Shown: in pieces, positions 11,162 through 45,429 of the stretch
How positions within the stretch are numbered: the first letter of the stretch is position 1
Layout of the letters: each line of letters opens with the position of its first letter
Source: Podarcis muralis
Lineage: Eukaryota
Length of the DNA: 64,000 nucleotides
Direction: 5' to 3'
Assembly (NCBI RefSeq): GCF_964188315.1
Contig: NC_135667.1
Location: 24,924,001 to 24,988,000, forward strand
Program-made: the position numbers and the translations under genes
Notes under the pieces: model-generated
The model's database searches: none
Seen by the model: only the letters and a program-made list of their open reading frames with translations
Told to the model about the DNA's origin: nothing

Positions 11162-11336
11162 ATTTGGCATATTCTCATGGTTCACCCAAATGACTTGTAT
11201 CGTTATTCTGGGTCAAATTTTCAGGAACACCTTCCCAGCTAAGACCAGACAGAATTTAACCGGGGTTTTTTTAAAAAAATATTTTTTTAAAAAATGCCCA
11301 TTTTTAACCTTAATGCACACTGCACACAGAACATGT

Positions 11337-11503
11337 TTTTGTCGTTTAGTCGTGTCTGACTATTCATGACCCCATGGACCAGAGCACAGCAGACACTCCT
11401 GTCTTCCACTGCCTCCCGCAGCTTGGTCAAACTCAAGTTCATAGCTTTGAGAACACTGTCCAACTATCTTGTCCTCTGTTGTCCCCTTCTCCTTGTGCCC
11501 TCA
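11337..11503 (-). mobile_element. RTE-BovB LINE 3' fragment
   Basis: GTCGTTTAGTCGTGTCTGAC...CCCATGGACCAGAGCAC...GGTCAAACTC is the reverse complement of the BovB 3' end. Confidence 0.75.
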
Positions 11504-21467: not shown

Positions 21468-21559
21468 TAATGGACTACTATGGATCTATGGACTACTTTT
21501 AAAATGAAGCTGCATTTTAAATTGCATTTTAACCTGTATTTTAATTTTTTCTGTATTAT

Positions 21560-21628
21560 GTTTTTATTGTAATTTTACTGGTGTTAGCTGCCCTAAGCCC
21601 AGCTCTGCCCGGGGAGGGTGGGGTATAA

Positions 21629-21685
<57 letters not shown>
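21560..21685 (+). mobile_element. L2-type LINE 3' tail ending in (TAT)n
   Basis: GCTGCCCTAAG...GGGTGGGGTATAAAT(TAT)n, a typical squamate L2 terminus. Confidence 0.55.
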
Positions 21686-22279
21686 TACATACAGCTGAGA
21701 AGTTTAGGATCTTTTGCTGGAGTTATGACGCGTTCTTGTGATGGATGTGTGTTAACCCCTAATCTTATGCCCACAAGAAGTTCTCACACAAAGAAACAAA
21801 GAAAGCTTGGTTTATTATATAAAATAGGAGTGACAGAATATATAAAAATGCTGCTTTAGATAGCAAAGTTACAATCTAGGAAGTAGCACATTACAATACA
21901 TGCACACTTTGATTAAACAACAAAAGATCCCCTAAGTATTCTAAAAGCCTACAGAACCAAAAATGGGGAGGAAGGGGGGAGTATGCCTGTCCTTAAAGTG
22001 AAACAGATATACAGAGTCCTAGGAATCACTGGGTTAAGTGCTGTCCTGTTAGAGCTGTGGGAGCTTTGCATCTATTTTTTTATATATATACATTTTGCCA
22101 AGGCATACCAGTAGACTGGAGGGGGTTGTGAAATGAGTGATTCCTACAATCTCTATAGTTACACTAGTGGCCAAAATTGTGGAAACCTTTTGGGAAAAAG
22201 TGTATTTCCAAGGTTTGATGGCTCATAACACCACTTTATTCTGGAGTAATACCATAAAATTATGTATCAATGGAAAAAC

Positions 22280-22480
22280 AATTTAATGAAGAATGCATTA
22301 AACTCAAGAGAGCAAATCTCTAGGAACACAAACCAGATATTACTGCACCCTCCTCCCCTTGCTGAATATATCTTTTTGGCCATCAATGACTGGTTGGGTT
22401 TCATATGCTTTTATGGAGGACTTTCCAAATGCACAGACAGCTGAAGTCCTTAGAGGAGAAAGCACATCTGAAGGTAAGAG
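22280..22480 (+). promoter_or_regulatory. Candidate OR promoter and 5'-UTR exon with splice donor (for the OR at 24272)
   Basis: TAATGA homeodomain-like site (~22284), O/E-like CTCAAGAGAG (22303) and TCTCTAGGAA, AG|GTAAGA donor at 22474; conserved in the paralogous block at ~41760-41980. Confidence 0.4.
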
Positions 22481-24271
22481 AAAAATATTACTAAATTAAT
22501 TCATATAGTTCAAACCTTACCTAACACCATATGAGTTACTTAATGGATCTCACATGTATATCCATTAAATCACTGGTTGCCAACTAATAGGTCATGGCCC
22601 GATTCAGTATAGGCTGCAACAGGAGCACCACCACCATGCAAATGTATAGTACAGGATTAATCAATTGTTCTCAACTTTATGTGTGGGTTAAAAGCAGGTC
22701 CTGAGTTGGAAAATGTTGAAGTTTGTTTATAAGAAAATCTTGATGAATGTGAGATTTTTTCCTGGGCGTGGGAATCCTTTTTTATTCTTCACACACACAT
22801 ACACAAAAAATGAGTTCTTTAAGTTTTAAAAACAGGGTGTTGTGTTGGCTATAATGCAGAACCACAATCAATAAAGCAAGAGCTGCCTTTAACATTTCAA
22901 ACTGAAGTGATTTTGGGGTTTTCTTCAGTGGCAAAACATCTGAGGAAAGTAGGAAGAGGAACTTAAGGAAAGATTGAATGAGTTTTTGCAAGCCTTCCAA
23001 AATTTATTTGACAGTTTCCATATGTATTGGGAAATTGAAAGGTTTTAACTAAGCTAGTGAAATTTCAGAGGAGGAAAGAGAGTTTGTGCTCCTTTCATAA
23101 TATACTGTGGCTTCTCTGATGCTTTGATTGCAGAATACTTATTACCTGCTGCATCTGAAAAAATCATTAACTTTCTTTTTATTTTCAAAGTGCCTGGTTC
23201 TCATGTAACAGATTTTATTACATTGTGGATCTATTCAGCTGCAGCCCCATGCACTCTTAACTGAAAATTACATCCAAATTGAACATAAGTAGGACAGGAC
23301 TGTATGTCAGTGAGTTGTAAGAACCACTTTCAATGTGTTTAGGTCTTTTACCCTCACTCTTCCAATTTTTCTCTCACAATTCTTTAAGCGCTTATTTATA
23401 TAGTATTTTTCCCAGTGTACTTTTGTTCCCTTCTGATATTGTCCCCCTCAAAAATGGCATCCTGTGGGGGATAGTAGGTGCTGATATTCAACAGGAGAAA
23501 GCTTAAAATCCTTTGGTGTGCAGGGTTAGGCTGTGTGCACAGTCCCCATTTCTCTGTGTGCTCCTATCACTGGTTTGAGAAGTGGTATACACACAGCATA
23601 AGCCACAAGCCACATGTCTCTGGTCATTTTTTAAGAACTGCTGCATTTCCTCCCAAACCACATTTGATCCAAGTTGTGAAGAGTGACCTAGCTACATTTC
23701 AAGCTGGTATTTAGTAGACATCCTTAGCTGTTCTAATCCCACACCCAAAATATCTATCCAGTACTATAACTTTTGTGGAAACTTTTTGGAAACTCCACCT
23801 AGGCATTGTTTCTTGTCTTACAGTTGAGTTTGTTACATATCTCCCTCAAAATTCTTCAGATGTTATTTTACATCACCCAAAATGCTGAAGTTACATCCAT
23901 GGGAGCTCTGAAGGCTGCTGATGTCCTTCGCAACTCATGGTGCAGGCAAGAGCAATGTGTTATTTTGTAATTGCAACTTTTGTTTTGCAACTATTTTAAG
24001 ACTGTTTCCAGTAAAAATTTGAAACTCATTCTTATGTTGGAGAGCAAATTCTTCTCTACTCTACACAAGGTCCAGATCGGGGACTCCAATGCACCATATT
24101 ATATATATTTTTTTTTTTTGGGGGGGGGGGTTTGGCATCCATCTGTCTTGGAGACAATGGAGTCCACCTCCAGGAGTATGAAATGTTAAATTCTCCAGGC
24201 TGAAGTGTTATATTACTAGAATATTCTGCTGTCATTAAAACTTTGTACTTCTGTTTCTTTTTGCAGAAAGC

Positions 24272-25249
24272 ATGGACCAAAGCAAAGACCAAACTATAGC
24301 TAACCAATCCTTTGTTTCAGAGTTTCTACTCCTGGAATTCTCAAAAGTTTGGGAATTTCAGATAATACACTTTGTAATATTCCTGGTATTGTACTTGGCA
24401 ATTGTAACAGGGAATCTTCTCATCATCTCTGTAGTAGCCTTTGACCATCGTCTGCACACCCCAATGTACCTCTTTCTAATGAACTTAGCCATGCAGGACC
24501 TGGGCCAAGTTTCAGTCATTATTCCCAAATCCATGGCCAATTCACTCATGAATTCTAGGCACATTTCTTATTCCGGATGCGTTGCTCAAGTCCTATTCTT
24601 CACCTTCTTCATATCTACTGATTTTTTCCTCCTCATAGTCATGGCCTATGATCGGTATGTTGCTATTTGCAACCCACTGCAATATCACATGGTGATGAAC
24701 AGGCGAGCCTGCTCTGAAATGATTTTTACTTCATGCGTCACTGGGTTTCTTTATGCAGGTTTGCACACTGTCAGCACTTTTGCAACTCCTTTCTGCTCCA
24801 ATGTTGTCAATCAGTTTTTCTGTGAAATCCCACAGTTAGTAAAGCTTTCCTGTTCTAAGAAAAATCAGATTGAAACTGGAGTTCTGCTCTTGTTTTGTCT
24901 CTTTGGGGTAGGCTGCTTTATATTTGTTCTTGTGACATATGTACAGATTTTTAGTGCGGTGTTAAGGATGACATCTGCACAGGGAAGACAAAAGGCCTTC
25001 TCTACCTGCCTTCCACATCTCATGGTATTCTCCACATTTATGGTCACAGGCTTGGTTTCCTATTTGAGTCCCATGACTAATACAGCAACACATTTAAATT
25101 TGTTTTTTACTGTGATATATTCTGTGGTCCCACCTTTGCTGAACCCACTGATTTACAGCATAAGAAATAAAGAGATCAAGGCTGTTTTGTCAAATATGTT
25201 AAGGTTGAAAACATCTTCAAATAAATTTGTTTTTAGTTTACTAATATAG
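24272..25249 (+). CDS. Olfactory receptor, class II, OR14-like (325 aa), intact
   Basis: Full OR motif set; acceptor TTTTTGCAG at 24266 just upstream of the ATG. Confidence 0.96.
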   Translation: MDQSKDQTIANQSFVSEFLLLEFSKVWEFQIIHFVIFLVLYLAIVTGNLLIISVVAFDHRLHTPMYLFLMNLAMQDLGQVSVIIPKSMANSLMNSRHISYSGCVAQVLFFTFFISTDFFLLIVMAYDRYVAICNPLQYHMVMNRRACSEMIFTSCVTGFLYAGLHTVSTFATPFCSNVVNQFFCEIPQLVKLSCSKKNQIETGVLLLFCLFGVGCFIFVLVTYVQIFSAVLRMTSAQGRQKAFSTCLPHLMVFSTFMVTGLVSYLSPMTNTATHLNLFFTVIYSVVPPLLNPLIYSIRNKEIKAVLSNMLRLKTSSNKFVFSLLI

Positions 25250-26195
25250 AAATTAATATAGTCATTTTCTTTAGGTATGGATATGAGTGTCACATGGATG
25301 TTTCATATTGATTTCAATGGGACCAAATAAAACTAAATCTGAATCCATCAATTGGTTGTTGTCTAACTATATGGATCTGCTAACATAAGGGTCTACATAA
25401 ACGAACTTCTACTACTTCTTGTCTTCCTGTGCATGCTTATGCCCTTCTAAATTTGTTCTTGGAGGTCCCCCAATGTCTCCAGAGTGGGAAAATGCATGCC
25501 TCCACCCTTCACTTCATCATAGACCACATTGTTCCCCAAGGTAGACTCCCTGAGCATTTTGTTGAAAGACCAGCCACACCACCACAGCTACTCTGCCATT
25601 GCTTTGCATCGTTCCCAGGTGTGCCACAACTGCAAAGTCACCGTCAACTGGCAGATCGATCTGGAGCTCTATGTCTCCTATGTGTACCTCAGCTTGTTCT
25701 ACTATTTTGACTATGATGATATGGCCCTGAATAGCATTGCCAAGTACTTCCTATTTCTTTTTGAAAAACAGCTTTGACATTTTGCAAACCTTTCTGAGGA
25801 TTTTTACAATCAAGTGGTGTATAAATTTTATGAAATAAATAAATTATTTATGCAAACACACATAACACAATCTAATTGAATATTTAGTGTACATAAGGAT
25901 GTTTATTTATTTAATGGATTTATACCCCTCCTTTTGGTGAGGGATTATACCAAGGTAGCAAACACAAATATATACATTGAATGTACAACAATATATAAAT
26001 TCATAATTAACATTAATGGTTTAAAGTATGTTTAATTCTTCATTGAATAGCAGCCACAAATTCTGGTACTCACTTGTGTATTGTTCTCAAGACTGTTCCA
26101 CAATAACTGCTCTTTGCAATCACATGCTTCCATTGACCTTCTATTTGAACATCTTTTTATTGAGATATAAGGAACTATATTATAAGTCCTATTTT

Positions 26196-26304
26196 TTGTT
26201 GTTGTTTAGTCGTTTAGTCGTGTCCGACTCTTCGTGATCCCATGGACCAGAGCACGCCAGGCACCTCTGTCCTCCACTACCTCCCGCAGTTTGGTCAAAC
26301 TCAT
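26196..26304 (-). mobile_element. RTE-BovB 3' fragment (duplicated at 33819-33927)
   Basis: TTGTTGTTTAGTCGTTTAGTCGTGTCCGACTC...GGTCAAACTCAT. Confidence 0.8.
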
Positions 26305-26887
26305 ACTCCTATTTTTACTCACCTGTAAATCCTGCAAACAAACAGAGCAAGGAGAGATAAGTGCAGTAAGCTCCACCCATCCCCAACATTTCTATCTTTT
26401 TACCCTCTGACTTGTCATGAAGGAATGGGACTGTTTAAAAAGAAATGAACATTTTGCAAGCAGTTGGGTTTGAGAATAATGGAGTTAATTTGCTTCCTGA
26501 AGTCAACCATGTATTGCAGGTGATCACTTCAGGAGATGTTAAAATGAGGAAGTAAAACATGGATTTGAGGCAGCCTGATCTATAAAGAGGATAAAGGACT
26601 CTAACTGAAATAATTTTGCTTAATGGAATTTTTGCAAATAGAAACCCCTTAGATAAGACTAGCAGGATGCTTTTATTGTGTTTGTACACCTAATTCAGCT
26701 GAATCCCAAACCAAGTGGAGTAATTGGGGGATACCATGGATTGCAACACTGAATGGAAAGGAAAGTTGGATGATAATGAAGGTGAGGAGGATAAATAGGC
26801 CAAACTTCACTCCAATTAACTCAATGTTTGCCTTAAAATTAAGAATTCCATTGTCTAGTCTATCCATGTCAATAATGTGTTCTAATT

Positions 26888-27860
26888 CAAGCTAAACAAA
26901 CCCAACTCCCTCAACTGTTCCTCATAAAGCTTCCTTTCCAGACTCTTGGTTATCTTGGCCACCATTCTTTGCACATATTCCAGCTTGTCATGATCCTTCT
27001 TAAATTGTGAAACCCAGAACTACACAATATTCTAGATGTGATCTGACCAAGGCAGAATAAAGTGATACTATTACTTCCCTTGATTGGGACACTATACTTC
27101 TGCTGATGCAGCCTAGAATAGCATTATATTTATTTTTTTGCTGTTAAAACACACTGTTGACACATCTTAAGCTTGTGGTCTTCTAAGACCCCTAGATCCT
27201 TTTCACATGTACTACTGGCAATCCAGTGATTTAGTGCAGTTGTTTCTTCCTGTCAAATGTGGAACCTTACATTTGTCCCTACTGAAATTCATTTTTTTTA
27301 GTTTGGGCCCAGGTCTGCAATCTGTTAAGGTTATATTGAATCCTGATTCTGTCTTTCATGGCATTAGCAACCCCTCCCAGTTTGGTGTCATCTGCAAACT
27401 TGATGAGCATCCCCTCAATTCCTTCGACCAAGTCATTTATAAAGACATTGAACAACAATGAGCTCAGGACAGAACCCTGTGGCACCCTACTTGTCACTTG
27501 TTTCCAGGATTAGGTGTACTCTTTGGATTGGGTCAGCCAGCCAGCTACAAATCCAACTAACAGTTACCCCACTCAACCCACATTTTACCAGCTTCTTCCC
27601 AAAAATATCACTTTGCCAAAAGTCTTACTGAAATCAAGTTACACTACGTCCACAGCATTCCCCTGATCCACCAAGCTTGATACTCAATCCATCAAAAAAA
27701 GAAAAGAAAAAAAGGAATAAAGAAATGAGATTTGTCTGGCATGACTTGTTTTTTAGAAACCCATGCTGGGTCTTGGTAATCACATCATCCTTTTCTATGT
27801 CCCCACAGACTGACTGTTGAATTATCTGTTCTCAAACTTTTCCTGGTATCAATGTCAAGA
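26888..27860 (-). mobile_element. CR1 LINE fragment, RT region (duplicated at ~34511-35483)
   Basis: VPQGSVLSSLLFNVFINDLVEGIEGMLIKFADDTKLGG is the CR1 RT PQG and FADD signature. Confidence 0.9.
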
Positions 27861-27898
27861 ACTTAGGCATGTGCCTCATCTGTTTTCCTTAAATATGA

Positions 27899-28655
27899 TG
27901 TCAGGGGTTCAGGAGCAGAGGGACAGGAGAGGGAGGAAGTAGAGACCGAGGGAGAGGAATCTGAGGGAGAAGTCAGCGAGGGTAGCCATCCGAGGTCTCT
28001 AAGTCTCTCCAGTGAATCAGAGGATTCACAGAAAGGGGCCCCAGTGGTCAGAGCCAGGGGGTTGCCAGAGGGAACACCCCAGGAAGGAGGGGCCAGAGGG
28101 GACTCAGAGAGCAGCAGCTGGAAATCGGGACCAACTTTCCCACCGGAGAGCAGTAAGGGGGAGGAGTCCCAAACATCGGCAGCAGGCAGCCTTCCGTCAG
28201 CGGAAGGACATGAGTCAGGGTTAGCCACGCCTGCATCAGAGAGCGAGGTAACGGTCAAAAGGAAGGTCAGGGGCAGCGCGCGCGCGCCAAGTTCAAATGT
28301 ACAGGAGGGGGGCGCAATGGGCAGTCCGGAGAGAGAGCCGGGTCCCAAAGCCCGCCGGAGAGAAGGGGAGGAGTCCGAAGGGTCCGCTTCCGAGGCATCC
28401 CGGAAAGAAGGCACCCAGGGGGGTAGTAGGACCCAGAGGAGGAAGGAGAAACGTAGAAGGTGGAGTAAGGCTAGAGTCTTAAGCTGGTGTACAGGGGGCG
28501 GAGACTCAGACGAGGCTTCGCTGGTCTAGGGTTTAGACGTAGAGACGCACGCTAGTGTTTGGAAATGGAAACTAAATGCCAATAAAGACTTCTGTACAGT
28601 TCTAATGGCTAGCGTTGGTCTTCTGTGAGCTGAGACCGGGAGGCAGTCTCTGACA
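27899..28655 (+). repeat. 5' LTR (757 bp)
   Basis: TG...CA termini; CTTAAG TATA-like element at ~28478; AATAAA at 28581. Confidence 0.95.
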
Positions 28656-28657
28656 GT

Positions 28658-28668
28658 AAGCCTCGTCT
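28658..28668 (+). promoter_or_regulatory. Self-priming primer binding site (Tf1 type)
   Basis: AAGCCTCGTCT is the exact reverse complement of AGACGAGGCTT at 28508-28518 inside the LTR; no TGG-initiated tRNA PBS. Confidence 0.8.
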
Positions 28669-28767
28669 CAAGTTACCATCGGTTTTCTTCGCCTCAAGCA
28701 TCGCTAAGGAAGCGAGGCAGGGAGGGTGGAAGACTGGTGCCTTGCGAGCTCACAAGAGTCAGGCAAG

Positions 28768-29844
28768 ATGACTACAGAACAGAAAATAGCTTCCCTGCAA
28801 GAAGCGGTGACGCTACTCAACGCTGAAATAATCGCATCCAGGAAGAGAGAGGAAGAAGCGGCAGCTGCATGCAGAGATCTTCAAGCCAGGTTGGAAGGGC
28901 TTGTAAAGCAGGGGATCCCAGCACCCAGGTCCGAGGGGATCGGTTTGGGGAAGAGAGGAGGCAGCATTGTATCTCATTTTGATGGGAATTTGCAGCAGTA
29001 CCCCAATTTCCGGGCAGATGTGCTGTTTGCGCTGCAGCTGCTGGAAAGAGACTTTAGAGATGAGCGGGAAAAAGTGGGGTTTATTTTGTCTCATTTGCAT
29101 GGGGACGCGAAATCATGGCTGCGCAACCTATGGAGAGATAAGGATCCGGCCCTCCAAAGCGCAGATGCGTTCATTAAGGCGATGGACTCCTGTTTCTTAT
29201 CCAAAATAGACCTGGACATTGCCCGGAGGGACATATTTGGGCTAAGACAAGGGAAAGCCAGCGTAAGGCAGTATCATTCCCGGTTTTTTGCATTGGTCAA
29301 CGCGCTGAATTGGGATAAGGATTCTCCGCCGGTTAGAGACCTTTTTTGGGAGGGTCTGAATGCACAGATCAAGGATGAGATGGCAAGGGGTGAGAGACCC
29401 ACCACCACTCAGCAAGTGGTTGAAAGAGCGTTATCTATTGGGGTGAGGCAGGAAGAACGTCCGTGGAGCAAAGAAGAAGGGCGTTGGGGACGTTCACCAG
29501 CGAGAGTGCCCTCCCTCTTGCCCAGAGAGGCAGCGCGTGCGCAGTCCACGCCTCCACAGGGAGGGGGCGAGGAGCAGATGGAGATTGGCGGTGCTAGGGC
29601 TCACTCAGCTACCAGAGCCTTAACGCCGGGAGCAGTAAAATCGAAGCTGCCTAGAAGGAACAGGAAGTGCTATATATGTGAGAGTGCAGAGCACATGGCG
29701 AAAGAGTGTCCCCAGAGGAGTTTCAAGCACACTGCAGCTTCAGTGACAGTATTGGAAACAACTCAGCAGAGAGCACCACAGCAGGGAAACGACCAGGTCT
29801 GGCTGGAAGAGGAGGTACTGGGGCCCAGCCAGACGAGTCAGTGA
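28768..29844 (+). CDS. gag: Gag (capsid-like domain plus CCHC zinc knuckle), 358 aa from the first ATG
   Basis: FDG motif, LRQG..SV..Y...F capsid motif, CYICESAEHMAKEC (CX2CX4HX4C). Confidence 0.93.
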   Translation: MTTEQKIASLQEAVTLLNAEIIASRKREEEAAAACRDLQARLEGLVKQGIPAPRSEGIGLGKRGGSIVSHFDGNLQQYPNFRADVLFALQLLERDFRDEREKVGFILSHLHGDAKSWLRNLWRDKDPALQSADAFIKAMDSCFLSKIDLDIARRDIFGLRQGKASVRQYHSRFFALVNALNWDKDSPPVRDLFWEGLNAQIKDEMARGERPTTTQQVVERALSIGVRQEERPWSKEEGRWGRSPARVPSLLPREAARAQSTPPQGGGEEQMEIGGARAHSATRALTPGAVKSKLPRRNRKCYICESAEHMAKECPQRSFKHTAASVTVLETTQQRAPQQGNDQVWLEEEVLGPSQTSQ

Positions 29845-32800
29845 GGAAGTCCCCAGAGATTTTGCAGCCCACAGACCCCCTCCCGCCCAAGCCAGTGGTG
29901 CAGCTAACCGCATCGCTTCAGCTGCCCAATGGACTCACCTTAGAAGTGCCTATTACAATTGACTCTGGCAGTAACGCAGACTTTATAGGATTGGAGTTCA
30001 TTCAACAACACAACGTAGCATTACTGCCAGCCACACTGCCCCTGAAGGTTGTCACGGTGGATGGCAGGGAACTGCTAGGGGGGCAGGTGGTGCAGCAGAC
30101 GCCGCCTATGGTGATGCAAATTGGGAATCACCGGGAAGTCATCAGTTTCAATGTCACCCAGCTGTCCGACACGCCTATAGTATTAGGCATGAGTTGGCTG
30201 CACAGGCACAGCCCAGCATTGGCGTGGTACCAGCGCCACCTGACTTTTGGCTCCTCCTACTGTGCAGAACACTGCATTATACCCAGCCCGGAAGGGGAAG
30301 AGGAGGACCCGCAGTTGCAGTTGGGCACGCTGCAAGCAGTACCCCACAAGTATGCGGAGTTTTTGGAGGTGTTCTGCGAGAAGGAGGCGGACAAGCTACC
30401 CCCTCACAGACCCTATGATTGCAAGATTGACCTCCTGCCGGGGGCGACGCTGCCTACTGGGAAACTGTACTCCATGTCTGAGGATGAACTGCAAGAACTC
30501 AGGGAGTTCATAGATCACAATTTGAAGCGTGGGTTCATCCGGGAGTCGAAAGCAGTGGGGGGCAGTCCCGTATTCTTTGTGAAGAAGCGGGATACGCCCC
30601 AAAAAAGACTGGTGGTGGACTTCAGAATCTTGAATTCGAAAACCAAGCCCTCAGCTTTCCCCATGCCCAAGATAGACGACTTGCTCGCGACGGTGCGGAA
30701 AGGACGCGTTTTCACCAAGCTGGATCTACGTGGCGCGTACAACTTGATTCGCATGCGCGACGGAGACGAGTGGAAGACGGCCATGTTCACGCCACTGGGC
30801 ACCTACGAATACAGAGTTATGCCCTTCGGATTACAAAATGGCTCTCACACTTTCCAAGCCTTTATGCATCACGTGCTGGCGGGGCTCCTTTACAAGAAGT
30901 GCGTATGCTTCCTGGACGACATCCTGATTTTTTCAGAATCGCGAGAGGCGCACGAGAGGGATGTCAGGGAAGTTCTGCAGAGACTGAAGGAGCACAGGCT
31001 GTACGCCAAACTGGAGAAGTGCCAGTTCGACGTGACGGAGGTGGATTTCCTGGGCTACAAGTTGTCGGACAAGGGGCTCGCCATGGACAGCGCCAAGGTT
31101 CGCGCAGTTTTGGACTGGAAGAGCCCACGCAATCGGAAGGAAGTCCAGCGGTTTGTCGGCTTTGCCAACTTTTACCGCAAGTTCATCAAGGGATTTGCCA
31201 TGCAGACAGCGGCCATCACCGACACGCTCAGCTCCAAGAAGAAGAAATTCATCTGGACGGAGCAAGCGGAGCAGTCCTTTCAGAAACTCAAGCGTCTCTT
31301 CGCGTCTGAAGAGCAGCTGCTGCATGTGAATCCCAGCAGACCCATGAGGGTGGAGACGGACGCCTCAGACAGAGCCGTGGGAGCTGTCCTGTTGCAACAA
31401 GACCAGCAGGGGGACTGGAGGCCGTGCGCCTTCTACTCGCGGAAGCTCAGCAAGTCGGAGCAGAATTACACTATCTGGGACAGGGAGTTGCTAGCCATAC
31501 ATGCAGCATTCAAGGCATGGAGGCACTTCCTCATCGGAGCCAGACATACAGTGCAGGTCCACACGGACCACAAGAATCTGGAGTACTGGCGCACGGCTAG
31601 GTTCCTCAACCAGAGACACATTAGATGGGCAGAGTTCTTCGCGGACTTCGACTTCAAGATAGAGTACATCCCAGGCGACAACAACGTGATGGCGGATGCA
31701 TTGTCCAGAAAGCCGCAATACCTGGAGGAGGCGGCACCGTCGGCGGCCAAGCACATTTTCGCACCGGAAGCGTGGGCATGCGCGTCGGCAACCGTGGACC
31801 TGGACGCCGTACGTCGCGCGCTGCGGGAAGACCCCTTCGCACGGGCCAAGATGGAGGAGGTGCACAGGGGCACAGCGAGGGCCGACGAGTTCCAGATCCG
31901 CGATGGGTTGCTCCTCCACAAGGGAGCACTCTACGTGCCGGGAGACGACCTCCGCGCAAGGGTCCTGCAGCAGCTACACGACGCTCCCACCGCAGGGCAC
32001 TTTGGCAAAGAAAAGACTGTCGAACTCGTAGCCAGAGACTTTTGGTGGCCCAAGATGCGGGGGGAAGTAGCGGATTACGTCTCGAGATGTGACACCTGCC
32101 AAAGGGCCAAGTCAGTTCACAGACCGCCGGCGGGATTGCTGGAACCGCTGCAGACACCGTCTGAACCGTGGGAGAGGGTGGCCCTGGACTTCGTCACGGA
32201 TCTGCCCAGCTCGAGGGGAAAGACAGCAGTGCTAGTGGTGGTGGACATGTTTACTAAGATGGCACACTTCATTCCGTGTGCGAAGGTAGCCACGGCAGAG
32301 CAGACCGCCAAACTGTTCATAGACCACGTGTTCAAGGTCCACGGTCTGCCACGGTCTATTCTTTCCGACCGGGGGCGACAGTTCATCTCGAACTTCTGGC
32401 AGAAGCTGATGGGCATTCTGAACGTCAAGGTCAATTTGGCGTCGGCGAGACACCCGCAGACCAACGGACAAGCGGAGAGGGTCAACGCCGTCATGCAGCA
32501 GTACCTAAGATGCTACGCCAATCAGCAGCCCACGACATGGGTGGACTACCTGCCACTCGCCGAGTTCGCTTACAACAATACGAAGCACGTGTCGACGGGG
32601 GTGACGACGTTCTTCGCCAACAACGGGAGGCATCCCAGAACCTTCCCGGGTTTAGAGAGAGTGGGGGAGGGGGAGCCACAGGCAGCGGAAGCCTTAGCGT
32701 CAGAGTTGCAGGAAGTCCACGAACAGCTCAGGAGGCAGCTAGAACTAGCAAAGCACGCATACAAGGTGCAGGCCGACAGACACAGAAGAGTTGGGGAAGA

Positions 32801-33860
32801 CATACAGGTGGGTGACTGGGTCTGGCTAGCAGCGCAAGCAGTGCCGACCAGATCATTAGCTAAGAAGAAGCTAGGACATAAGCAGCTAGGACCTTACCAA
32901 GTCCAGGCGCAGGTCAATCCAGTAGCCTTCCGGTTGGCTCTTCCGGAGGGTTCCAGAATGCATCCGGTGTTCCATAGATCGGTGCTCACGCCCTACAAAG
33001 CACCTCATAGGTTTCAGGAGCCGGACACAGCACCAGACCAGAGCAGTGAAGGGCCCAGAGTGAGGGGGCCGCCTAGGAAGGGACACATCAATGAGGTCAC
33101 AGAGATTTTGGACTCCAGATGGGGGGAAGAGGGAGTAGAATATTTTCTAGCCAGAGAGGGTACCCCGGCCAGTGCCAACAGCTGGGTACCGGACTATGCC
33201 TTGGAGGAACCGCTGCTCAAAGAGGAGTTTCATGCCCTCTTCCCGCACAGGCCCATGCCAGCAGAGTATTTCGATGACTGGCTTTTCACACCCACTCTTT
33301 CAGCCAGCACATTCCTGGGGTTCGACTCGGACGAGGAACAGGCACCAGTCCCCAGCTCTCAGGTGGGTTCGCCACCGGGGTCTGCCTCAGACCACTCGTA
33401 TTGGTGGGACGATCAACCAGAGGAGCAGTGGCGCAGGAAGTGGCTGAGGGGTCCTTGGATGGGACCACCCGAAGAGGGGGAGAGGGGCGAGACGGACATG
33501 GACGTGTTGGGGGACAACGTGGGGTTCGAGCATGAAGACAGAGAGATGGAAGCAGAGGAGAGCGACGTTGACGAGTACATGGGGGATGAACTGTATCCGG
33601 CAAGCACCCCCGCGACGACGGAGCACCCAGTACCCGCACAGGAAGGAGGGGAGGGGGGAAGGGGGGGCTTCGAGGGGGGGATGGATGTATTGTGTATTGT
33701 GTATTGTTCTCAAGACTGTTCCACAATAACTGCTCTTTGCAATCACATGCTTCCATTGACCTTCTATTTGAACATCTTTTTATTGAGATATAAGGAACTA
33801 TATTATAAGTCCTATTTTTTGTTGTTGTTTAGTCGTTTAGTCATGTCCGACTCTTCGTGA
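29706..33860 (+). CDS. pol: Pol polyprotein (protease, RT, RNase H, integrase, chromodomain), probably expressed as a -1 Gag-Pol fusion from ~29790
   Basis: IDSGS protease; KLDLRGAY, MPFGL and FLDD RT; TDAS...ELLAI...TDHKNL...ADALSR RNase H; HHCC, D-D-E and GPY integrase; EILDSR..EYF..SWV chromodomain; 1384 open codons. Confidence 0.97.
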   Translation: MSPEEFQAHCSFSDSIGNNSAESTTAGKRPGLAGRGGTGAQPDESVRKSPEILQPTDPLPPKPVVQLTASLQLPNGLTLEVPITIDSGSNADFIGLEFIQQHNVALLPATLPLKVVTVDGRELLGGQVVQQTPPMVMQIGNHREVISFNVTQLSDTPIVLGMSWLHRHSPALAWYQRHLTFGSSYCAEHCIIPSPEGEEEDPQLQLGTLQAVPHKYAEFLEVFCEKEADKLPPHRPYDCKIDLLPGATLPTGKLYSMSEDELQELREFIDHNLKRGFIRESKAVGGSPVFFVKKRDTPQKRLVVDFRILNSKTKPSAFPMPKIDDLLATVRKGRVFTKLDLRGAYNLIRMRDGDEWKTAMFTPLGTYEYRVMPFGLQNGSHTFQAFMHHVLAGLLYKKCVCFLDDILIFSESREAHERDVREVLQRLKEHRLYAKLEKCQFDVTEVDFLGYKLSDKGLAMDSAKVRAVLDWKSPRNRKEVQRFVGFANFYRKFIKGFAMQTAAITDTLSSKKKKFIWTEQAEQSFQKLKRLFASEEQLLHVNPSRPMRVETDASDRAVGAVLLQQDQQGDWRPCAFYSRKLSKSEQNYTIWDRELLAIHAAFKAWRHFLIGARHTVQVHTDHKNLEYWRTARFLNQRHIRWAEFFADFDFKIEYIPGDNNVMADALSRKPQYLEEAAPSAAKHIFAPEAWACASATVDLDAVRRALREDPFARAKMEEVHRGTARADEFQIRDGLLLHKGALYVPGDDLRARVLQQLHDAPTAGHFGKEKTVELVARDFWWPKMRGEVADYVSRCDTCQRAKSVHRPPAGLLEPLQTPSEPWERVALDFVTDLPSSRGKTAVLVVVDMFTKMAHFIPCAKVATAEQTAKLFIDHVFKVHGLPRSILSDRGRQFISNFWQKLMGILNVKVNLASARHPQTNGQAERVNAVMQQYLRCYANQQPTTWVDYLPLAEFAYNNTKHVSTGVTTFFANNGRHPRTFPGLERVGEGEPQAAEALASELQEVHEQLRRQLELAKHAYKVQADRHRRVGEDIQVGDWVWLAAQAVPTRSLAKKKLGHKQLGPYQVQAQVNPVAFRLALPEGSRMHPVFHRSVLTPYKAPHRFQEPDTAPDQSSEGPRVRGPPRKGHINEVTEILDSRWGEEGVEYFLAREGTPASANSWVPDYALEEPLLKEEFHALFPHRPMPAEYFDDWLFTPTLSASTFLGFDSDEEQAPVPSSQVGSPPGSASDHSYWWDDQPEEQWRRKWLRGPWMGPPEEGERGETDMDVLGDNVGFEHEDREMEAEESDVDEYMGDELYPASTPATTEHPVPAQEGGEGGRGGFEGGMDVLCIVYCSQDCSTITALCNHMLPLTFYLNIFLLRYKELYYKSYFLLLFSRLVMSDSS
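29784..29856 (+). promoter_or_regulatory. -1 ribosomal frameshift signal: slippery G GGA AAC plus predicted H-type pseudoknot
   Basis: Heptamer at 29784-29790 in the gag frame; stem 1 GTCTGGCTGG (29797-29806) / CCAGCCAGAC (29825-29834); stem 2 CTGGGG (29818-29823) / CCCCAG (29851-29856). Confidence 0.85.
33646..33685 (+). promoter_or_regulatory. Polypurine tract
   Basis: GGAGGGGAGGGGGGAAGGGGGGG-CTTC-GAGGGGGGGATGGA immediately before TGT. Confidence 0.8.
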
Positions 33861-36278
33861 TCCCATGGACCAGAGCACGCCAGGCACCTCTGTCCTCCAC
33901 TACCTCCCGCAGTTTGGTCAAACTCATACTCCTATTTTTACTCACCTGTAAATCCTGCAAACAAACAGAGCAAGGAGAGATAAGTGCAGTAAGCTCCACC
34001 CATCCCCAACATTTCTATCTTTTTACCCTCTGACTTGTCATGAAGGAATGGGACTGTTTAAAAAGAAATGAACATTTTGCAAGCAGTTGGGTTTGAGAAT
34101 AATGGAGTTAATTTGCTTCCTGAAGTCAACCATGTATTGCAGGTGATCACTTCAGGAGATGTTAAAATGAGGAAGTAAAACATGGATTTGAGGCAGCCTG
34201 ATCTATAAAGAGGATAAAGGACTCTAACTGAAATAATTTTGCTTAATGGAATTTTTGCAAATAGAAACCCCTTAGATAAGACTAGCAGGATGCTTTTATT
34301 GTGTTTGTACACCTAATTCAGCTGAATCCCAAACCAAGTGGAGTAATTGGGGGATACCATGGATTGCAACACTGAATGGAAAGGAAAGTTGGATGATAAT
34401 GAAGGTGAGGAGGATAAATAGGCCAAACTTCACTCCAATTAACTCAATGTTTGCCTTAAAATTAAGAATTCCATTGTCTAGTCTATCCATGTCAATAATG
34501 TGTTCTAATTCAAGCTAAACAAACCCAACTCCCTCAACTGTTCCTCATAAAGCTTCCTTTCCAGACTCTTGGTTATCTTGGCCACCATTCTTTGCACATA
34601 TTCCAGCTTGTCATGATCCTTCTTAAATTGTGAAACCCAGAACTACACAATATTCTAGATGTGATCTGACCAAGGCAGAATAAAGTGATACTATTACTTC
34701 CCTTGATTGGGACACTATACTTCTGCTGATGCAGCCTAGAATAGCATTATATTTATTTTTTTGCTGTTAAAACACACTGTTGACACATCTTAAGCTTGTG
34801 GTCTTCTAAGACCCCTAGATCCTTTTCACATGTACTACTGGCAATCCAGTGATTTAGTGCAGTTGTTTCTTCCTGTCAAATGTGGAACCTTACATTTGTC
34901 CCTACTGAAATTCATTTTTTTTAGTTTGGGCCCAGGTCTGCAATCTGTTAAGGTTATATTGAATCCTGATTCTGTCTTTCATGGCATTAGCAACCCCTCC
35001 CAGTTTGGTGTCATCTGCAAACTTGATGAGCATCCCCTCAATTCCTTCGACCAAGTCATTTATAAAGACATTGAACAACAATGAGCTCAGGACAGAACCC
35101 TGTGGCACCCTACTTGTCACTTGTTTCCAGGATTAGGTGTACTCTTTGGATTGGGTCAGCCAGCCAGCTACAAATCCAACTAACAGTTACCCCACTCAAC
35201 CCACATTTTACCAGCTTCTTCCCAAAAATATCACTTTGCCAAAAGTCTTACTGAAATCAAGTTACACTACGTCCACAGCATTCCCCTGATCCACCAAGCT
35301 TGATACTCAATCCATCAAAAAAAGAAAAGAAAAAAAGGAATAAAGAAATGAGATTTGTCTGGCATGACTTGTTTTTTAGAAACCCATGCTGGGTCTTGGT
35401 AATCACATCATCCTTTTCTATGTCCCCACAGACTGACTGTTGAATTATCTGTTCTCAAACTTTTCCTGGTATCAATGTCAAGAACTTAGGCATGTGCCTC
35501 ATCTGTTTTCCTTAAATATGATGTCAGGGGTTCAGGAGCAGAGGGACAGGAGAGGGAGGAAGTAGAGACCGAGGGAGAGGAATCTGAGGGAGAAGTCAGC
35601 GAGGGTAGCCATCCGAGGTCTCTAAGTCTCTCCAGTGAATCAGAGGATTCACAGAAAGGGGCCCCAGTGGTCAGAGCCAGGGGGTTGCCAGAGGGAACAC
35701 CCCAGGAAGGAGGGGCCAGAGGGGACTCAGAGAGCAGCAGCTGGAAATCGGGACCAACTTTCCCACCGGAGAGCAGTAAGGGGGAGGAGTCCCAAACATC
35801 GGCAGCAGGCAGCCTTCCGTCAGCGGAAGGACATGAGTCAGGGTTAGCCACGCCTGCATCAGAGAGCGAGGTAACGGTCAAAAGGAAGGTCAGGGGCAGC
35901 GCGCGCGCGCCAAGTTCAAATGTACAGGAGGGGGGCGCAATGGGCAGTCCGGAGAGAGAGCCGGGTCCCAAAGCCCGCCGGAGAGAAGGGGAGGAGTCCG
36001 AAGGGTCCGCTTCCGAGGCATCCCGGAAAGAAGGCACCCAGGGGGGTAGTAGGACCCAGAGGAGGAAGGAGAAACGTAGAAGGTGGAGTAAGGCTAGAGT
36101 CTTAAGCTGGTGTACAGGGGGCGGAGACTCAGACGAGGCTTCGCTGGTCTAGGGTTTAGACGTAGAGACGCACGCTAGTGTTTGGAAATGGAAACTAAAT
36201 GCCAATAAAGACTTCTGTACAGTTCTAATGGCTAGCGTTGGTCTTCTGTGAGCTGAGACCGGGAGGCAGTCTCTGACA
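33697..36278 (+). repeat. Right copy of the 2.58-kb direct repeat
   Basis: Offset of 7623 bp from 26074-28655; begins within (TGTATTG)3 at 33686-33706. Confidence 0.95.
35522..36278 (+). repeat. 3' LTR core (757 bp)
   Basis: Same sequence as 27899-28655. Confidence 0.95.
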
Positions 36279-36283
36279 GTTGA

Positions 36284-36750
36284 GTTCCATTGTAAAGCCC
36301 AAGGATATAATTGTCAGATTCACCTTTCACTTAATTAAGAGGAATTACTCAAGAGAGAGTCAAAGTGCTAAAATTCCAGGATCCCAAGACCATTGTTTTA
36401 CAAAATATACGTGGAGGCACTTTAGGGCACCACCACTACTCAGCCTTGTAATGGGGTATCTACACAAAGTGAAAATTCCATATAGATGAGGCTTCCCATT
36501 CAATCTCATGGTCACAGTGGATGGAATACTGCATTCGGCGATCTGCATTTGATTCATCCTTTAGGTGAATCCTAAATGTAATGTGACGATACTTTGATGG
36601 AACGTATGAGGGTTGGGAGACCCAAGCAAATGTAAAAGGGTAGCTGATGCTGTCCACGAGCACCACGAGCACCAGCCTAATGTTATCTGTCTCCAGGAGT
36701 CACACCATGTTGAGTCTGTTGTATGCCTACTAAAACACAAGTATTTTTAA
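36284..36750 (+). mobile_element. Old L1-type LINE relic (ORF1 C-terminus and start of the ORF2 endonuclease)
   Basis: KPKDIIVRF and IPYR*GFPFNLMV (ORF1); IL*WNV*GLGDPSKCKRV...PNVICLQESH (APE endonuclease N-terminus). Confidence 0.75.
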
Positions 36751-37546
36751 GACTGCTGTAAGGGGAATCCATTGATTCCCATTACCCAGATTGCACTAAA
36801 AATGTTGTTAGAATCAGCTTACTCATATTGTGCTAAGAATGTGTCAAGAATATTTGTGCAGGAATAACTCAGCCTTGAGCTAGCCTGATAACAAGTTCCA
36901 TCCTCTTCTTGCTGAACAAGGTTTCCAGCTCTGATAATGCCTGCTTTTCCTCTGTGAATGTCACTTAATTTCTACATCCATGTGTATAAAGCTAAGGAAA
37001 GGGCTCTATATAAGCCTGCGTAATTTATACATCTGTGGAATCGACCCTGGTGAACTCCCCAGTGACTGTTGCTTCTTGTCAAAATAAAACTGCATTAAGC
37101 TTTCCTTGCTGTGTTCATAAAATAATTCCAACACACTATTATATTGGACCCAGGACCAGAAGTTCAAGAGGGGTTGCCATAATCTTAAATGCTACTTTTC
37201 ATTCACCATAAGGTGAATGGTGACCCAGTTAGCTATTATGGCCCAAGTCCTTTCTATAAATTCTAACAGCACTTTGGATCACGGACAATCTAAGTTCACC
37301 ACCTGCACAACTCTCAAAATACACATCTGATTCAGTGTTGCTGAGCTGTACAAGACTCATGAGAATTAAACCTTCAGGGTGTGATTAGAAATGAGACATG
37401 AATAAACTCAATGCTGAAGCTTACCACTGTTAGAACAGATAGAGAGATGTTGAGAGAACATCACTAAGATAGTTACAGCTGAATAAGAAAGAAGTAATGT
37501 GATATATTTCTGTTCACAGGTACCAAACAAACATCAGAGAAGCACA

Positions 37547-38506
37547 ATGTCTAACCAGTCAAGAGTGAATGGATTCCTTCTTCATGGATTTGCTGAAATC
37601 CAGCAGTTGCAGATATTCCACATCATCATTTTTGTCATGATGTATTTGGTGGCCTTCATAGAAAACCTTCTCATCATTACAGTCATCATCTATAGCCACC
37701 AGCTTCATACACCCATGTACTTCTTTCTGGCCAACCTGTCATTCCAAGACTTTGGCTCCATATCCGTTACAGTTCCCAAGTCCATTGCAAATTCATTGAT
37801 GAAGACCCAAACCATCTCTTACTCTGGATGTATCTGCCAAGTCTCCTTCCTTGTCTTCTTCATGGTCTCCCACTTCATCATTCTTGGTGTCATGGCATAT
37901 GATCGCTATGTTGCCATCTGCAATCCACTGCATTATGAGACTGTTATGAACAAAAAAGCTTGCATTCAGATGGCAGCCAGTGCATGGATTGGTGGAGTTT
38001 TTTATTCAACTATGTACACTGGGGCTACATTCAGATTTGAGTTCTGTTCTAATGTCATCAATCAGTTCTTCTGTGAAATCCCACAACTGCTGAAAATCTC
38101 TTGCTCTGACTCATATCTCAATGAAATTTGGGTTCTGATTTTTGGGTCTTCTTTTGGCTTCCTTTATTTTTCTCTAATTATTTTTTCTTATGTTCAGATC
38201 TTCAGAGCTATTCTTAGAATCCCATCCAGCCAAGGGAAGCAAAAATTCTTCTCAACTTGCTTGCCTCACTTTATTGTTATTTCCCTGTTTGTGGTAAGTG
38301 GCACCTTTGTGTATTTCAGACCAAGTTCCAGTTCCCCATCAGCATTTGACCTCCTGGTTTCTATGTTCTACTGCATGGTGCCACCAGTAATGAACCCACT
38401 CATATATAGCATGAGAAACAAGGAACTGAAAGTGGCATTCTGGAAACTGATTACTAACATTTCTCCCCCAATCCTTCGGCAAAAACCGTTCTCCAGTGCA
38501 TTTTAA
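37547..38506 (+). CDS. Olfactory receptor, class II (319 aa), intact, more divergent
   Basis: LHTPMYFFL, MAYDRYVAIC, KFFSTC (variant) and PPVMNPLIYSMRN; start at MSNQ after the acceptor TTCACAG at 37519. Confidence 0.94.
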   Translation: MSNQSRVNGFLLHGFAEIQQLQIFHIIIFVMMYLVAFIENLLIITVIIYSHQLHTPMYFFLANLSFQDFGSISVTVPKSIANSLMKTQTISYSGCICQVSFLVFFMVSHFIILGVMAYDRYVAICNPLHYETVMNKKACIQMAASAWIGGVFYSTMYTGATFRFEFCSNVINQFFCEIPQLLKISCSDSYLNEIWVLIFGSSFGFLYFSLIIFSYVQIFRAILRIPSSQGKQKFFSTCLPHFIVISLFVVSGTFVYFRPSSSSPSAFDLLVSMFYCMVPPVMNPLIYSMRNKELKVAFWKLITNISPPILRQKPFSSAF

Positions 38507-38631
38507 AAAACAGTTTCTGTTGTCTATATGCCTTGCCCAAAATTTCCATTTATATGTTTGTTTACTCAGAATTAGGCAACACTGAACTCAATAGGAATTA
38601 CTCTCAGGTAAAGATTGTAGCCATATAGGGC

Positions 38632-38945
38632 TTTAGACTGATGTTGTACTAAAGCTTTGATCCTCCCTACCCATTACCCATGCTAGCAGAGGCAGACAGA
38701 AATTGGAGGACCAATATACAAGCCAAGCCTTATTTAGAGTGAATAAACTCCCAAACTGGGCAAATGTAGCTAGCTCACTGCTAGCATTTAGACTGATGTT
38801 GTACTAAAGCTTTGATCCTCCCTACCCATTACCCATGCTAGCAGAGGCAGACAGAAATTGGAGGACCAATATACAAGCCAAGCCTTATTTAGAGTGAATA
38901 AACTCCCAAACTGGGCAAATGTAGCTAGCTCACTGCTAGCATTTA
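38632..38945. repeat. 155-bp tandem duplication (two copies, no mismatch noticed)
   Basis: 38632-38786 repeated at 38787-38941, with TTTA at the junctions. Confidence 0.92.
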
Positions 38946-44330: not shown

Positions 44331-44439
44331 TCTAGCTCTGTTTTATTTGTCTCTTATAGCACTTCTTAGGCAGCATTGTATTATTACAATATTCTGTTGC
44401 AATTAAGAGATACCACTTCTGATTCTTTTTACAGATAGC

Positions 44440-45429
44440 ATGGATGTTAGCAAGGATCAAGCCATCGCTAACCAAACTACTGTTTCAGAGTTTCTGCTTC
44501 TGGAATTCTCAAAAGTTCAAAAATTACAAAGTCTACACAGCATCCTGTTCCTGGTATTGTATTTGGCAACTGTAACAGGGAATCTTTTAATAATCTCTGC
44601 AGTAGCCTTTGACCACCACCTGCACACCCCAATGTATATCTTCCTGATGAACTTGGCCATGCAGGACCTGGGCCAGGTTTCGGTCATTATCCCCCAATCC
44701 ATGGCCAATTCACTCATGAATACTACTCACATTTCTTATTCCGGATGTGTTGGTCAAGCCCTATTCTTCACCTTCTTCTTATCTACTGATTTTTTCCTCC
44801 TCATAGTCATGGCCTATGATCGGTATGTTGCTATCTGTAATCCACTGCAATACCAGGTGGTGATGAACAGGAGAGCCTGCACTGAAATGATCCTTACTGT
44901 ATGGATCACTGGGTTTCTTTATGCAGGTTTGCACACTGTCAGCACTTTTGCAACTCCTTTCTGCTCCAATGTTGTCAATCAGTTTTTCTGTGAAATCCCA
45001 CAGTTAGTAAAGCTTTCCTGTTCTAAGAAAAATCAGATTGAAACTGGAGTTCTGCTCTTGTTTTCTCTCATTGGGTTAGGCTGCTTTATATTTGTTCTTG
45101 TGACATATGTACAGATTTTTAGTGCGGTGTTAAGGATGCCATCTGCACAGGGAAGACAAAAGGCCTTCTCTACCTGCCTTCCACATCTCATGGTATTCTC
45201 CACATTTATGGTCACAGGCTTGTTTTCCTATTTGAGTCCCATGACTAATACAGCAACACATTTAGACTTAATTTTTACAGTGATATATTCCATGGTCCCA
45301 CCTTTGCTGAACCCACTGATTTACAGCATGAGAAACAAAGAGATCAAGGCTGCTTTGTCTAATTTGTTAAGACTAAGGACCACTTCCAATAATATATTAT
45401 TTAGTTTTCTTCTCTGTGTGTGGATTTAA
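44440..45429 (+). CDS. Olfactory receptor, class II, OR14-like (329 aa), intact; paralog of 24272-25249
   Basis: Full OR motif set; aligns to the 24272 gene at an offset of 20168. Confidence 0.96.
   Translation: MDVSKDQAIANQTTVSEFLLLEFSKVQKLQSLHSILFLVLYLATVTGNLLIISAVAFDHHLHTPMYIFLMNLAMQDLGQVSVIIPQSMANSLMNTTHISYSGCVGQALFFTFFLSTDFFLLIVMAYDRYVAICNPLQYQVVMNRRACTEMILTVWITGFLYAGLHTVSTFATPFCSNVVNQFFCEIPQLVKLSCSKKNQIETGVLLLFSLIGLGCFIFVLVTYVQIFSAVLRMPSAQGRQKAFSTCLPHLMVFSTFMVTGLFSYLSPMTNTATHLDLIFTVIYSMVPPLLNPLIYSMRNKEIKAALSNLLRLRTTSNNILFSFLLCVWI

Follow-up and report, generated by a model that had tools for sequence, protein, structure and literature searches.

In C. elegans, theta-mediated joining of aborted homologous-repair (SDSA) intermediates gives rise to duplications of 0.1-10 kb with templated "patchwork" insertions (Kamp et al. 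2021, PMC8654963). The duplication that we describe here, from the lizard Podarcis muralis, is similar: the tract is kilobase-sized, one border is set by homology, and the other has microhomology and a templated, repeated filler. It differs in that the invading end would have used a non-allelic but identical LTR, and in that the copy lies inside a retrotransposon, displaced by 7.6 kb, instead of being head-to-tail. Also, no repair-deficient background is known here. Another relevant process is ectopic LTR-LTR recombination, which yields solo LTRs and recombinants without matching target duplications. There too, the identity of the LTRs drives the rearrangement, but LTR-LTR recombination deletes or exchanges DNA, whereas here flanking DNA was added by the 3' LTR, and both LTRs and the internal region were kept.

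When an insert lies in U3 of the 3' LTR, as in double-copy retroviral vectors and retroviral transduction, both LTRs end up carrying a copy. Our locus likewise has foreign DNA between the polypurine tract (PPT) and R of the 3' LTR. In working double-copy vectors, U3 holds the insert at a point past the integrase attachment site; here, in contrast, the added DNA starts 3 nt into U3, displaces the attachment site, interrupts the tail of pol, and adds two poly(A) signals, and no progeny are known. As for the element itself, it resembles self-priming Ty3/gypsy elements of the Tf1/sushi type: R opens with 11 nt complementary to the element's primer-binding site, and the two covary; a Tf2-type SH3 domain follows the integrase. 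As in chromovirus-like elements whose pol extends into the LTR, pol continues through the PPT into U3. Unlike either group, the lizard family has a 209-codon LTR-encoded tail, and the copy studied here has no Pfam chromodomain match. In a limited literature search, we found no described precedent for a flank duplication at a 3' LTR.

We analyzed a 64,000-nt stretch of the P. muralis genome (the window), which contains no N runs or gaps. Self-BLAST of the window showed that 26074-28657 and 33697-36280 form a direct repeat of 2,584 bp, with 99.96% identity, 1 mismatch, 0 gaps, and an offset of 7,623 bp. This agrees with an earlier sequence-only reading, which had reported a constant offset and one substitution. 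The sole mismatch (26220 G vs. 33843 A) is at a CpG. The LTR proper (757 bp, TGTCAG...CTGACA) is just the final third of the repeat; at 27899, where it begins, the G+C content rises from about 40% to about 60%. The rest of the repeat is a 1,825-bp segment, which we call X (left) and X' (right); the two are 99.95% identical, with that one difference. We did not find further copies of the LTR or of X elsewhere within the 64-kb window. The overall order is X-LTR-gag-pol-PPT-X'-LTR, and the features are:

26074-27898, plus strand: X, ancestral host DNA to the left of the insertion and donor of the copy; contiguous with both flanks at empty sites
26197-26306, plus strand: 110-bp retroposon-like insert in X with a 10-bp target duplication (TCCTATTTTT); lineage-specific
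27279-27494, minus strand: LINE-type reverse-transcriptase fragment in X (Pfam RVT_1, E = 4.1e-7)
27894-27898, plus strand: left copy of the target site, TATGA (5 bp), from the empty sites
27899-28655, plus strand: 5' LTR, 757 bp, TGTCAG...CTGACA; boundary set by the empty site and by a relative from Podarcis lilfordi
27899-28507, plus strand: U3 of the 5' LTR, with R from about 28508 and AATAAA at 28581
28508-28518, plus strand: start of R (LTR position 610), 11 nt complementary to the primer-binding site
28658-28668, plus strand: primer-binding site, AAGCCTCGTCT, 2 nt (GT) past the LTR
28768-29844, plus strand: gag, with capsid and CCHC knuckle (Pfam Retrotrans_gag, Ty3_capsid, zf-CCHC)
29706-33860, plus strand: pol, with protease, reverse transcriptase, RNase H, integrase, and Tf2-type SH3; continues past the PPT and stops 55 codons into X'
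33648-33680, plus strand: PPT, also a G-quadruplex-type motif (G4 A G6 AA G7 N6 G7); conserved in the P. lilfordi relative
33681-33696, plus strand: new junction, ATGGA + TGT + ATTGTGTA
33697-35521, plus strand: X', the duplicated X between the PPT and the 3' LTR, from the self-comparison
35522-36278, plus strand: 3' LTR, 757 bp, identical to the 5' LTR; AATAAA at 36204
36279-36283, plus strand: right copy of the target site, GTTGA rather than TATGA

The element has the hallmarks of Ty3/gypsy (Metaviridae): LTRs that begin with TG and end with CA, with short inverted termini; a CCHC-containing gag (gag domain at residues 120-211, CCHC at 313-330); and protease, reverse transcriptase, RNase H, and integrase in that order in pol (RVP_2 at 83-183, RVT_1 at 292-453, RNase H at 517-648, and integrase at 747-917). 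An exact look-up of gag found no record, and a search for gag homologs returned only short Logan contigs. The P. lilfordi relative (L004) has the same LTR ends. It also has the 11-nt perfect complementarity between the primer-binding site and R, at the same position and with two compensatory changes; the complementarity is present as well in one of those Logan contigs (L005, 93% identical), which we used for this comparison alone. Given that the primer-binding site is complementary to the predicted 5' end of the element's own transcript, we predict self-priming of the Tf1/sushi type. There was no Pfam Chromo match at E <= 0.01 after the integrase core of the window's pol, and by this search the copy does not classify as a chromovirus. 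A 43%-identical protein from P. lilfordi carries PF00385, and thus a degenerate chromodomain in the window's pol is possible. The element is very young.

The orthologous site is empty in Podarcis raffonei and in Lacerta agilis. In both genomes, X continues from the left flank and meets the right flank directly: the sequence reads AAATATGA|GTTCC (...TATGA|GTTCC) in P. raffonei and AAATATGA|ATTCC in L. agilis. The point at which the flanks join corresponds exactly to 27898|36281 in window numbering. X is 98.2% identical to the P. raffonei sequence (19 mismatches and 4 gap openings in 1,601 aligned columns), so the donor is ancestral and in cis, and the copy, with 1 difference in 1,825 bp, is younger than the split of the species. 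The 110-bp insert is present in X and X' alike but is missing from P. raffonei and L. agilis. It includes the only X/X' mismatch, and it has relatives at 11334-11435 and 53853-53955 of the window. The sequence-only reading described X as BovB and CR1 fragments plus unique DNA. We did find a LINE-type reverse-transcriptase fragment and a retroposon-like insert, but the family names are that reading's alone. An Rfam search of 25300-28700 gave no match.

Because X is present at the empty sites of two lacertids, there is strong support from these sequence comparisons that X is ancestral host DNA in place and that X' is a local copy of it. A local, templated duplication at the DNA level, by way of microhomology or a template switch, had been only slightly favored before these comparisons.

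The two borders of X' are quite different. The right border, between X' and the LTR, is seamless and has no scar, because X and the LTR were copied as one unit. The left border has microhomology and templated filler. In the related P. lilfordi element, the normal junction is PPT-ATGGA|TGTCAG, so the start of X' is at most 3 nt from the start of U3, the break fell within the same 3 nt, and the internal region is complete. In the window, ATGGA (the usual final 5 nt ahead of U3) is followed by TGT, which is common to the start of U3 and to a heptamer and so is a 3-nt microhomology. The next 8 nt, ATTGTGTA, are filler for which the TGTATTG unit of X served as template. The earlier description of this junction as (TGTATTG)3, versus one unit in X, is right about the three units (33686-33706), but X has one full unit plus a partial TTG (26074-26083). 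Both outgroups carry the short form, as in X. The string PPT-ATG-GATGT-[1,831 bp]-GATGT-CAGGGG from the same account is exact, with the bracketed part at 33689-35519. We rejected the idea that GATGT is a 5-bp, integrase-type target duplication of X': the right GATGT is host GA plus LTR TGT, and it occurs at the 5' copy as well.

At the right end of the element, the target copy keeps the 5-nt spacing, but its first 2 nt were swapped for GT. The same GT stands behind the terminal CA of the 5' LTR; in the one relative that we examined, whose target-site duplication is 5 bp (GCGGC), it is missing after the 3' LTR. The retained GT shows that the right end, too, was irregularly repaired after integration.

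The best reading of this locus, to which we assign a probability of roughly two in three, is that the end bearing the 3' LTR primed on the 5' LTR and copied X, and that microhomology-mediated end joining then completed the repair. A self-priming Ty3/gypsy element would have inserted very recently at TATGA, between two olfactory-receptor genes. (An exact look-up of the left olfactory-receptor protein found no record.) At or soon after insertion, the duplex would have suffered a break, or not been sealed, where the PPT meets U3 of the 3' LTR. The 3' LTR-bearing end may then have paired not at its own position but with the 5' LTR, an identical sequence on either the same molecule or the sister chromatid, and synthesis leftwards beyond the 5' LTR would have copied 1,825 bp of host DNA. 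The released strand probably joined the PPT-side end via TGT, and priming that twice started and aborted on the TGTATTG/TTG motif would account for the filler. The product would be the observed arrangement.

That X is ancestral and in place, that X' was copied from this genome's own X, the exact position, and the anatomy of the junction are observed. What we infer is in which order the steps took place, which enzymes acted (polymerase-theta-like end joining), and why the break occurred. The repair reading is supported by the lineage-only insert in X' and by the single CpG change, as compared to 1.8% divergence from P. raffonei. Also, the PPT/U3 border is the only site at which a break makes both LTRs equal templates and leaves a visible scar. 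The sequence is compatible with a DNA or an RNA template, and with a synthesis-first or a microhomology-first switch, and cannot distinguish between them. A G-quadruplex-induced break normally deletes the G tract. The tract is intact here, which counts against this version of the repair reading, and we rejected a classical G-quadruplex gap scar. Our preferred guess is that a plus-strand discontinuity at the PPT was left unsealed after integration and that replication turned it into a two-ended break. More specifically, the duplication might be a by-product of integration, with the unsealed PPT/U3 discontinuity and the unremoved GT at the right end as joint remnants and the break at first replication repaired on the 5' LTR; we consider this version rather doubtful.

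Several other explanations would also place X' next to the 3' LTR. It is established for retroviruses that reverse transcription places whatever lies between the PPT and R at both ends. X could therefore have been captured elsewhere, and the whole unit retrotransposed, so that both nearly identical 2.58-kb repeats are true extended LTRs. But the extra DNA of an extended LTR should be missing from an empty site, and in two outgroups X is joined to both flanks, which is the outcome that had been named beforehand as the one to refute this idea. Furthermore, the 11 nt directly after ATGGA in the right repeat have no counterpart in the left one, and there is no target duplication around 26074/36280. 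We consider capture elsewhere to be refuted and give it almost no weight. An RNA-mediated route would begin with a host-started transcript near 26074 that reads into the element; its cDNA would gain X in front of U3 by aberrant strand transfer at the PPT and then convert the resident copy through homologous recombination. The family looks active (identical LTRs and open gag and pol), reverse transcriptases slip on short repeats and switch templates at microhomologies, and the PPT border is a natural landmark of reverse transcription. Still, this route depends on three rare events: transcription that starts upstream at the right place, synthesis that extends from an unpaired tail of 1.8 kb, and conversion of the donor locus by cDNA. 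X' is fully colinear with X, with nothing that demands RNA. Also, a free cDNA with extended LTRs is expected to start its 5' copy directly after the PPT, but the X at the 5' side is plain host DNA. We think that this route is unlikely.

The structure with X' is known from one assembly, so we considered whether X' was made by the assembler, with the real locus being a plain insertion (X-LTR-internal-LTR) or another array. A run search with the 60-nt junction listed zero runs, but just 2 sampled words underlie that search. The top shares among the listed individuals were 0.77, near the 0.74 expected for X' plus the right flank; these individuals seem to lack the entire insertion and hence to be uninformative about X'. 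The lone X/X' difference could be a heterozygous site. On the other hand, the junction is not a simple overlap or collapse but novel sequence that combines 3 nt of microhomology with 8 nt of templated filler; the window is gap-free; and the block, of a size that single long reads can span, is located within a long contig. An artefact thus seems quite improbable. Deletion by LTR-LTR recombination is common for LTR elements, and the offset of the repeat is one 7,623-bp unit, so a tandem duplication of the X-LTR-internal unit could have occurred first, with the second internal region then lost through LTR-LTR recombination. This requires two independent rearrangements within the time that allowed a single substitution in 2.6 kb, and a single repair event yields the same product; we regard it as very unlikely. 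Two other candidates fail on orientation or order: half-site integration with strand displacement predicts LTR-X' instead of the observed X'-LTR, and a long read-in RNA as self-primer predicts an inverted X.

Could X' be mobilized? The sequence-only reading called this copy ORF-intact and forecast progeny with LTRs of about 2.6 kb. Although gag and pol are open, pol is severed from a conserved tail: in this family, pol normally reads through the PPT and for 209 further codons inside the LTR, and this tail is under purifying selection (dN/dS of 0.20). X' swaps it for 55 unrelated codons. Furthermore, X' begins after 3 nt of U3, which shifts the TGTCAG inverted repeat 1.83 kb inward; the new left end would start with TGTATTG. 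There are also two sense-strand AATAAA motifs in X' (34679 and 35339). Because the U3 end is displaced, pol is cut from its tail, and X' contains the two AATAAA, the transduction forecast is weak, and weaker than was claimed.

X' looks like the scar of mis-templated DNA repair rather than captured cargo. This natural rearrangement can be read to the nucleotide at every border, and there are empty sites, a relative with the canonical structure, and, within the copied DNA, a marker specific to this lineage. It suggests that the identity of a fresh insertion's two LTRs can misdirect repair and duplicate host flank into the element. Annotators should be cautious, as very long "LTRs" from repeat detection may be an LTR plus duplicated flank. 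As a single case, this is mainly a well-documented repair scar. The copied flank does sit at the one position from which mobilization is possible in principle. If the duplication is indeed a by-product of integration, then a recurrent route inherent to young LTR insertions would place their own 5' flank at the start of U3, from where reverse transcription can copy it to both ends; LTR elements would in this way have a means of transducing 5' flanks. Should other young insertions prove to have this architecture, a link between unfinished integration intermediates and the capture of flanking DNA would be indicated.

Comparing the window with itself, we identified one long direct repeat: 26074-28657 and 33697-36280, offset by 7,623, align gap-free across 2,584 bp with a single mismatch. 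The mismatch (G at 26220, A at 33843) lies within a CpG. This bears out the sequence-only reading that X, the host DNA to the left of a gypsy element, recurs at a constant offset of 7623 with one substitution, as X'. The PPT-ATG-GATGT junction string, the 1,831-bp spacing, and the three TGTATTG units that it described are all exact in the sequence. At 27899 the G+C content jumps from ~40% to ~60%, and in each repeat the 757-bp LTR (TGTCAG...CTGACA, with 6-nt inverted ends) begins at this step. Two reading frames, gag and pol, lie between the repeats. There are no runs of N in the window, and within its 64 kb we found no further copies of the element.

Features of the locus, in order
24272-25249: olfactory-receptor gene, left of the element
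26074-27898: X, host DNA
27899-28655: 5' LTR
gag, with capsid and CCHC domains
pol, with protease, reverse transcriptase, RNase H, integrase, and Tf2-type SH3 domains
33648-33680: polypurine tract (PPT)
33697-35521: X', the second copy of X
35522-36278: 3' LTR
37547-38506: olfactory-receptor gene, right of the element

A short way downstream of the right-hand receptor gene is a perfect tandem repeat (38632-38945; 159 bp at offset 155). Also, 24208-25203 and 44376-45371 are olfactory-receptor paralogues (89.8% DNA identity, 20 kb apart), and this pair is found in P. raffonei as well.

Orthologous loci from Podarcis raffonei (L002) and Lacerta agilis (L003) were taken from the 90% cluster of the right-hand receptor protein.

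Alignment of P. raffonei (L002) to the window
L002 2489-7157: window 21483-26196, crossing 26074 unbroken
L002 7148-8747: window 26307-27898
L002 8745-11152: window 36281-38697

At the empty site, P. raffonei reads ...AAATATGA/GTTCC... and L. agilis reads ...AAATATGA/ATTCC..., which places the insertion of the gypsy element at TATGA. Both outgroups keep X joined to its flanks, so X is host DNA that was ancestrally at this site and has not moved. This refutes the proposal that X was captured elsewhere and that both repeats are true extended LTRs; an empty site with X is the outcome that the sequence-only reading had set against that proposal. Its other model, a local templated duplication of DNA (by microhomology or template switch), is supported and can be made more specific. 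A 10-bp target duplication, TCCTATTTTT, marks a retroposon-like, lineage-specific insert of 110 bp within X (26197-26306). The insert is present in X' and absent from both P. raffonei and L. agilis, which implies that X' was templated by the X of the same lineage. X differs by 1.8% from P. raffonei and by 0.05% from X'. Presumably, the insert resembles the 3' region of BovB/Sauria-SINE; related copies are at 11334-11435 and 53853-53955. The L. agilis orthologue of X holds a 5.3-kb insertion (L003 1987-7295), and ~45 bp to the left of its TATGA site are a (GAA)n microsatellite and a SINE-like block (L003 ~7890-8230).

When the C-terminal third of pol served as query, a Podarcis lilfordi protein was retrieved whose contig (L004) contains a complete related element (~80% DNA identity).

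Borders of the P. lilfordi element
Left flank: ...GCGGC/TGTCAG...
End of 5' LTR: ...CTGACA, then GT, then AAGC...
PPT junction: ...GGGGGATGGA/TGTCAGGGG...
End of 3' LTR: ...CTGACA/GCGGC...

The LTRs of this element are bounded by TG...CA, and its target duplication is 5 bp long. GT (2 nt) separates its 5' LTR from the primer-binding site and does not follow its 3' LTR, and PPT-ATGGA abuts U3 directly. Two more LTR-like stretches on this contig (1393-2188, minus strand, and 14070-14845), ~66% identical to the LTR in the window, suggest that several related gypsy lineages lie close together there.

In the window, ATGGA is followed by TGT, then ATTGTGTA, and then X from 26074 on. No more than 3 nt separate the start of X' from the first base of U3, and no internal bases are missing. 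Across 26074, both outgroups read CACTTGTGTATTGTTCTC, so the three-unit heptamer is new to the X' junction. By sequence, this junction would amount to a 3-nt microhomology plus two abortive rounds of templated synthesis: GGATGT would pair with the TGT of X and be extended by ATTG, re-pair via TTG and be extended by TGTATTG, and then re-pair once more before lasting extension. On its right, X' runs into the LTR without a scar, since the two were copied together as a single unit; on its left, it is bordered by a microhomology junction.

One repair event is enough to account for both borders. An end whose outermost bases were the first of the 3' LTR would invade the identical 5' LTR, synthesis would leave this LTR and proceed 1.8 kb into X, and microhomology-mediated joining would link the freed strand to the end on the PPT side. 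In C. elegans, aborted homologous repair that is closed by polymerase-theta joining yields duplications of 0.1-10 kb, with templated and sometimes repeated insertions (PMC8654963). This product requires a break at the LTR border. A break within the LTR would heal invisibly, and one further left would favour the allelic template.

As to the cause of the break, one candidate was the PPT itself, as a strong G-quadruplex motif. Scars of that kind normally lose the G tract, but here it is intact, and we rejected this candidate. Our favoured cause is a plus-strand discontinuity at the PPT that stayed unsealed in a fresh integrant and that replication would convert to a two-ended break. This would fit the precise place where the break lies, the preservation of the PPT, and a second sign of irregular repair after integration: the right target copy (36279-36283) is GTTGA, versus TATGA on the left (27894-27898), with the 5-nt spacing kept. 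Its two odd bases equal the GT found next to the terminal CA of the 5' LTR; in P. lilfordi no GT follows the 3' LTR. This suggests that an end was left unprocessed, or a 2-nt flap left in place in the course of gap repair; the 5-nt stagger was preserved.

Positions 28658-28668 (11 nt) perfectly complement LTR position 610 (28508-28518); by our own estimate, ~0.006 such matches are expected by chance. In P. lilfordi the complement (L004 6014-6024 and 6163-6173) occupies the same place in the LTR and shows two compensatory changes; a 93%-identical relative (L005) also retains the complement to the primer-binding site. The element's predicted mode of priming is Tf1/sushi-type self-priming, which would place the start of R at ~28508 and give a U3 of 609 nt, nearly all of it coding. 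In this family, pol normally runs past the PPT into the LTR for 209 codons (window 27900-28529, L004 5406-6035), with its stop at 28527-28529; in the 5' LTR of the P. lilfordi element this frame is likewise open and ends at the identical stop. Between these two elements, dN/dS is 0.20 for this tail, versus 1.68 and 0.83 in the other two frames.

In principle, DNA from the PPT to R is copied to both ends, and the copy had been forecast, as ORF-intact, to give progeny with ~2.6-kb LTRs that carry host DNA. We consider such transduction doubtful. X' pushes the terminal TGTCAG of U3 1.83 kb away, and the new end would share only TGT with it; X' bears two AATAAA signals on the sense strand; and X' severs the pol tail, replacing it with 55 unrelated codons. 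"ORF-intact" thus holds for the gag and pol frames with their domains, but not for the LTR-encoded end of pol.

In the best sequencing runs, the fraction of the query matched was 0.77, versus 0.74 for X' plus the right flank. These values are close, so the animals among the runs listed probably lack the entire insertion. This would be in keeping with an allele that is very young and rare, and it lends the X' junction no support. The structure was read from a single assembly, and we still think it quite unlikely that an assembly artefact created it, because the junction is new sequence with a biological pattern. X' may instead have arisen by an RNA-templated route or by a two-step DNA route. 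Aborted repair from the LTR border, our preferred reading, would make the X' structure a new variant among the known repair-generated rearrangements at LTR elements. As a single case its interest is moderate, and it would be higher if recurrence were proven.
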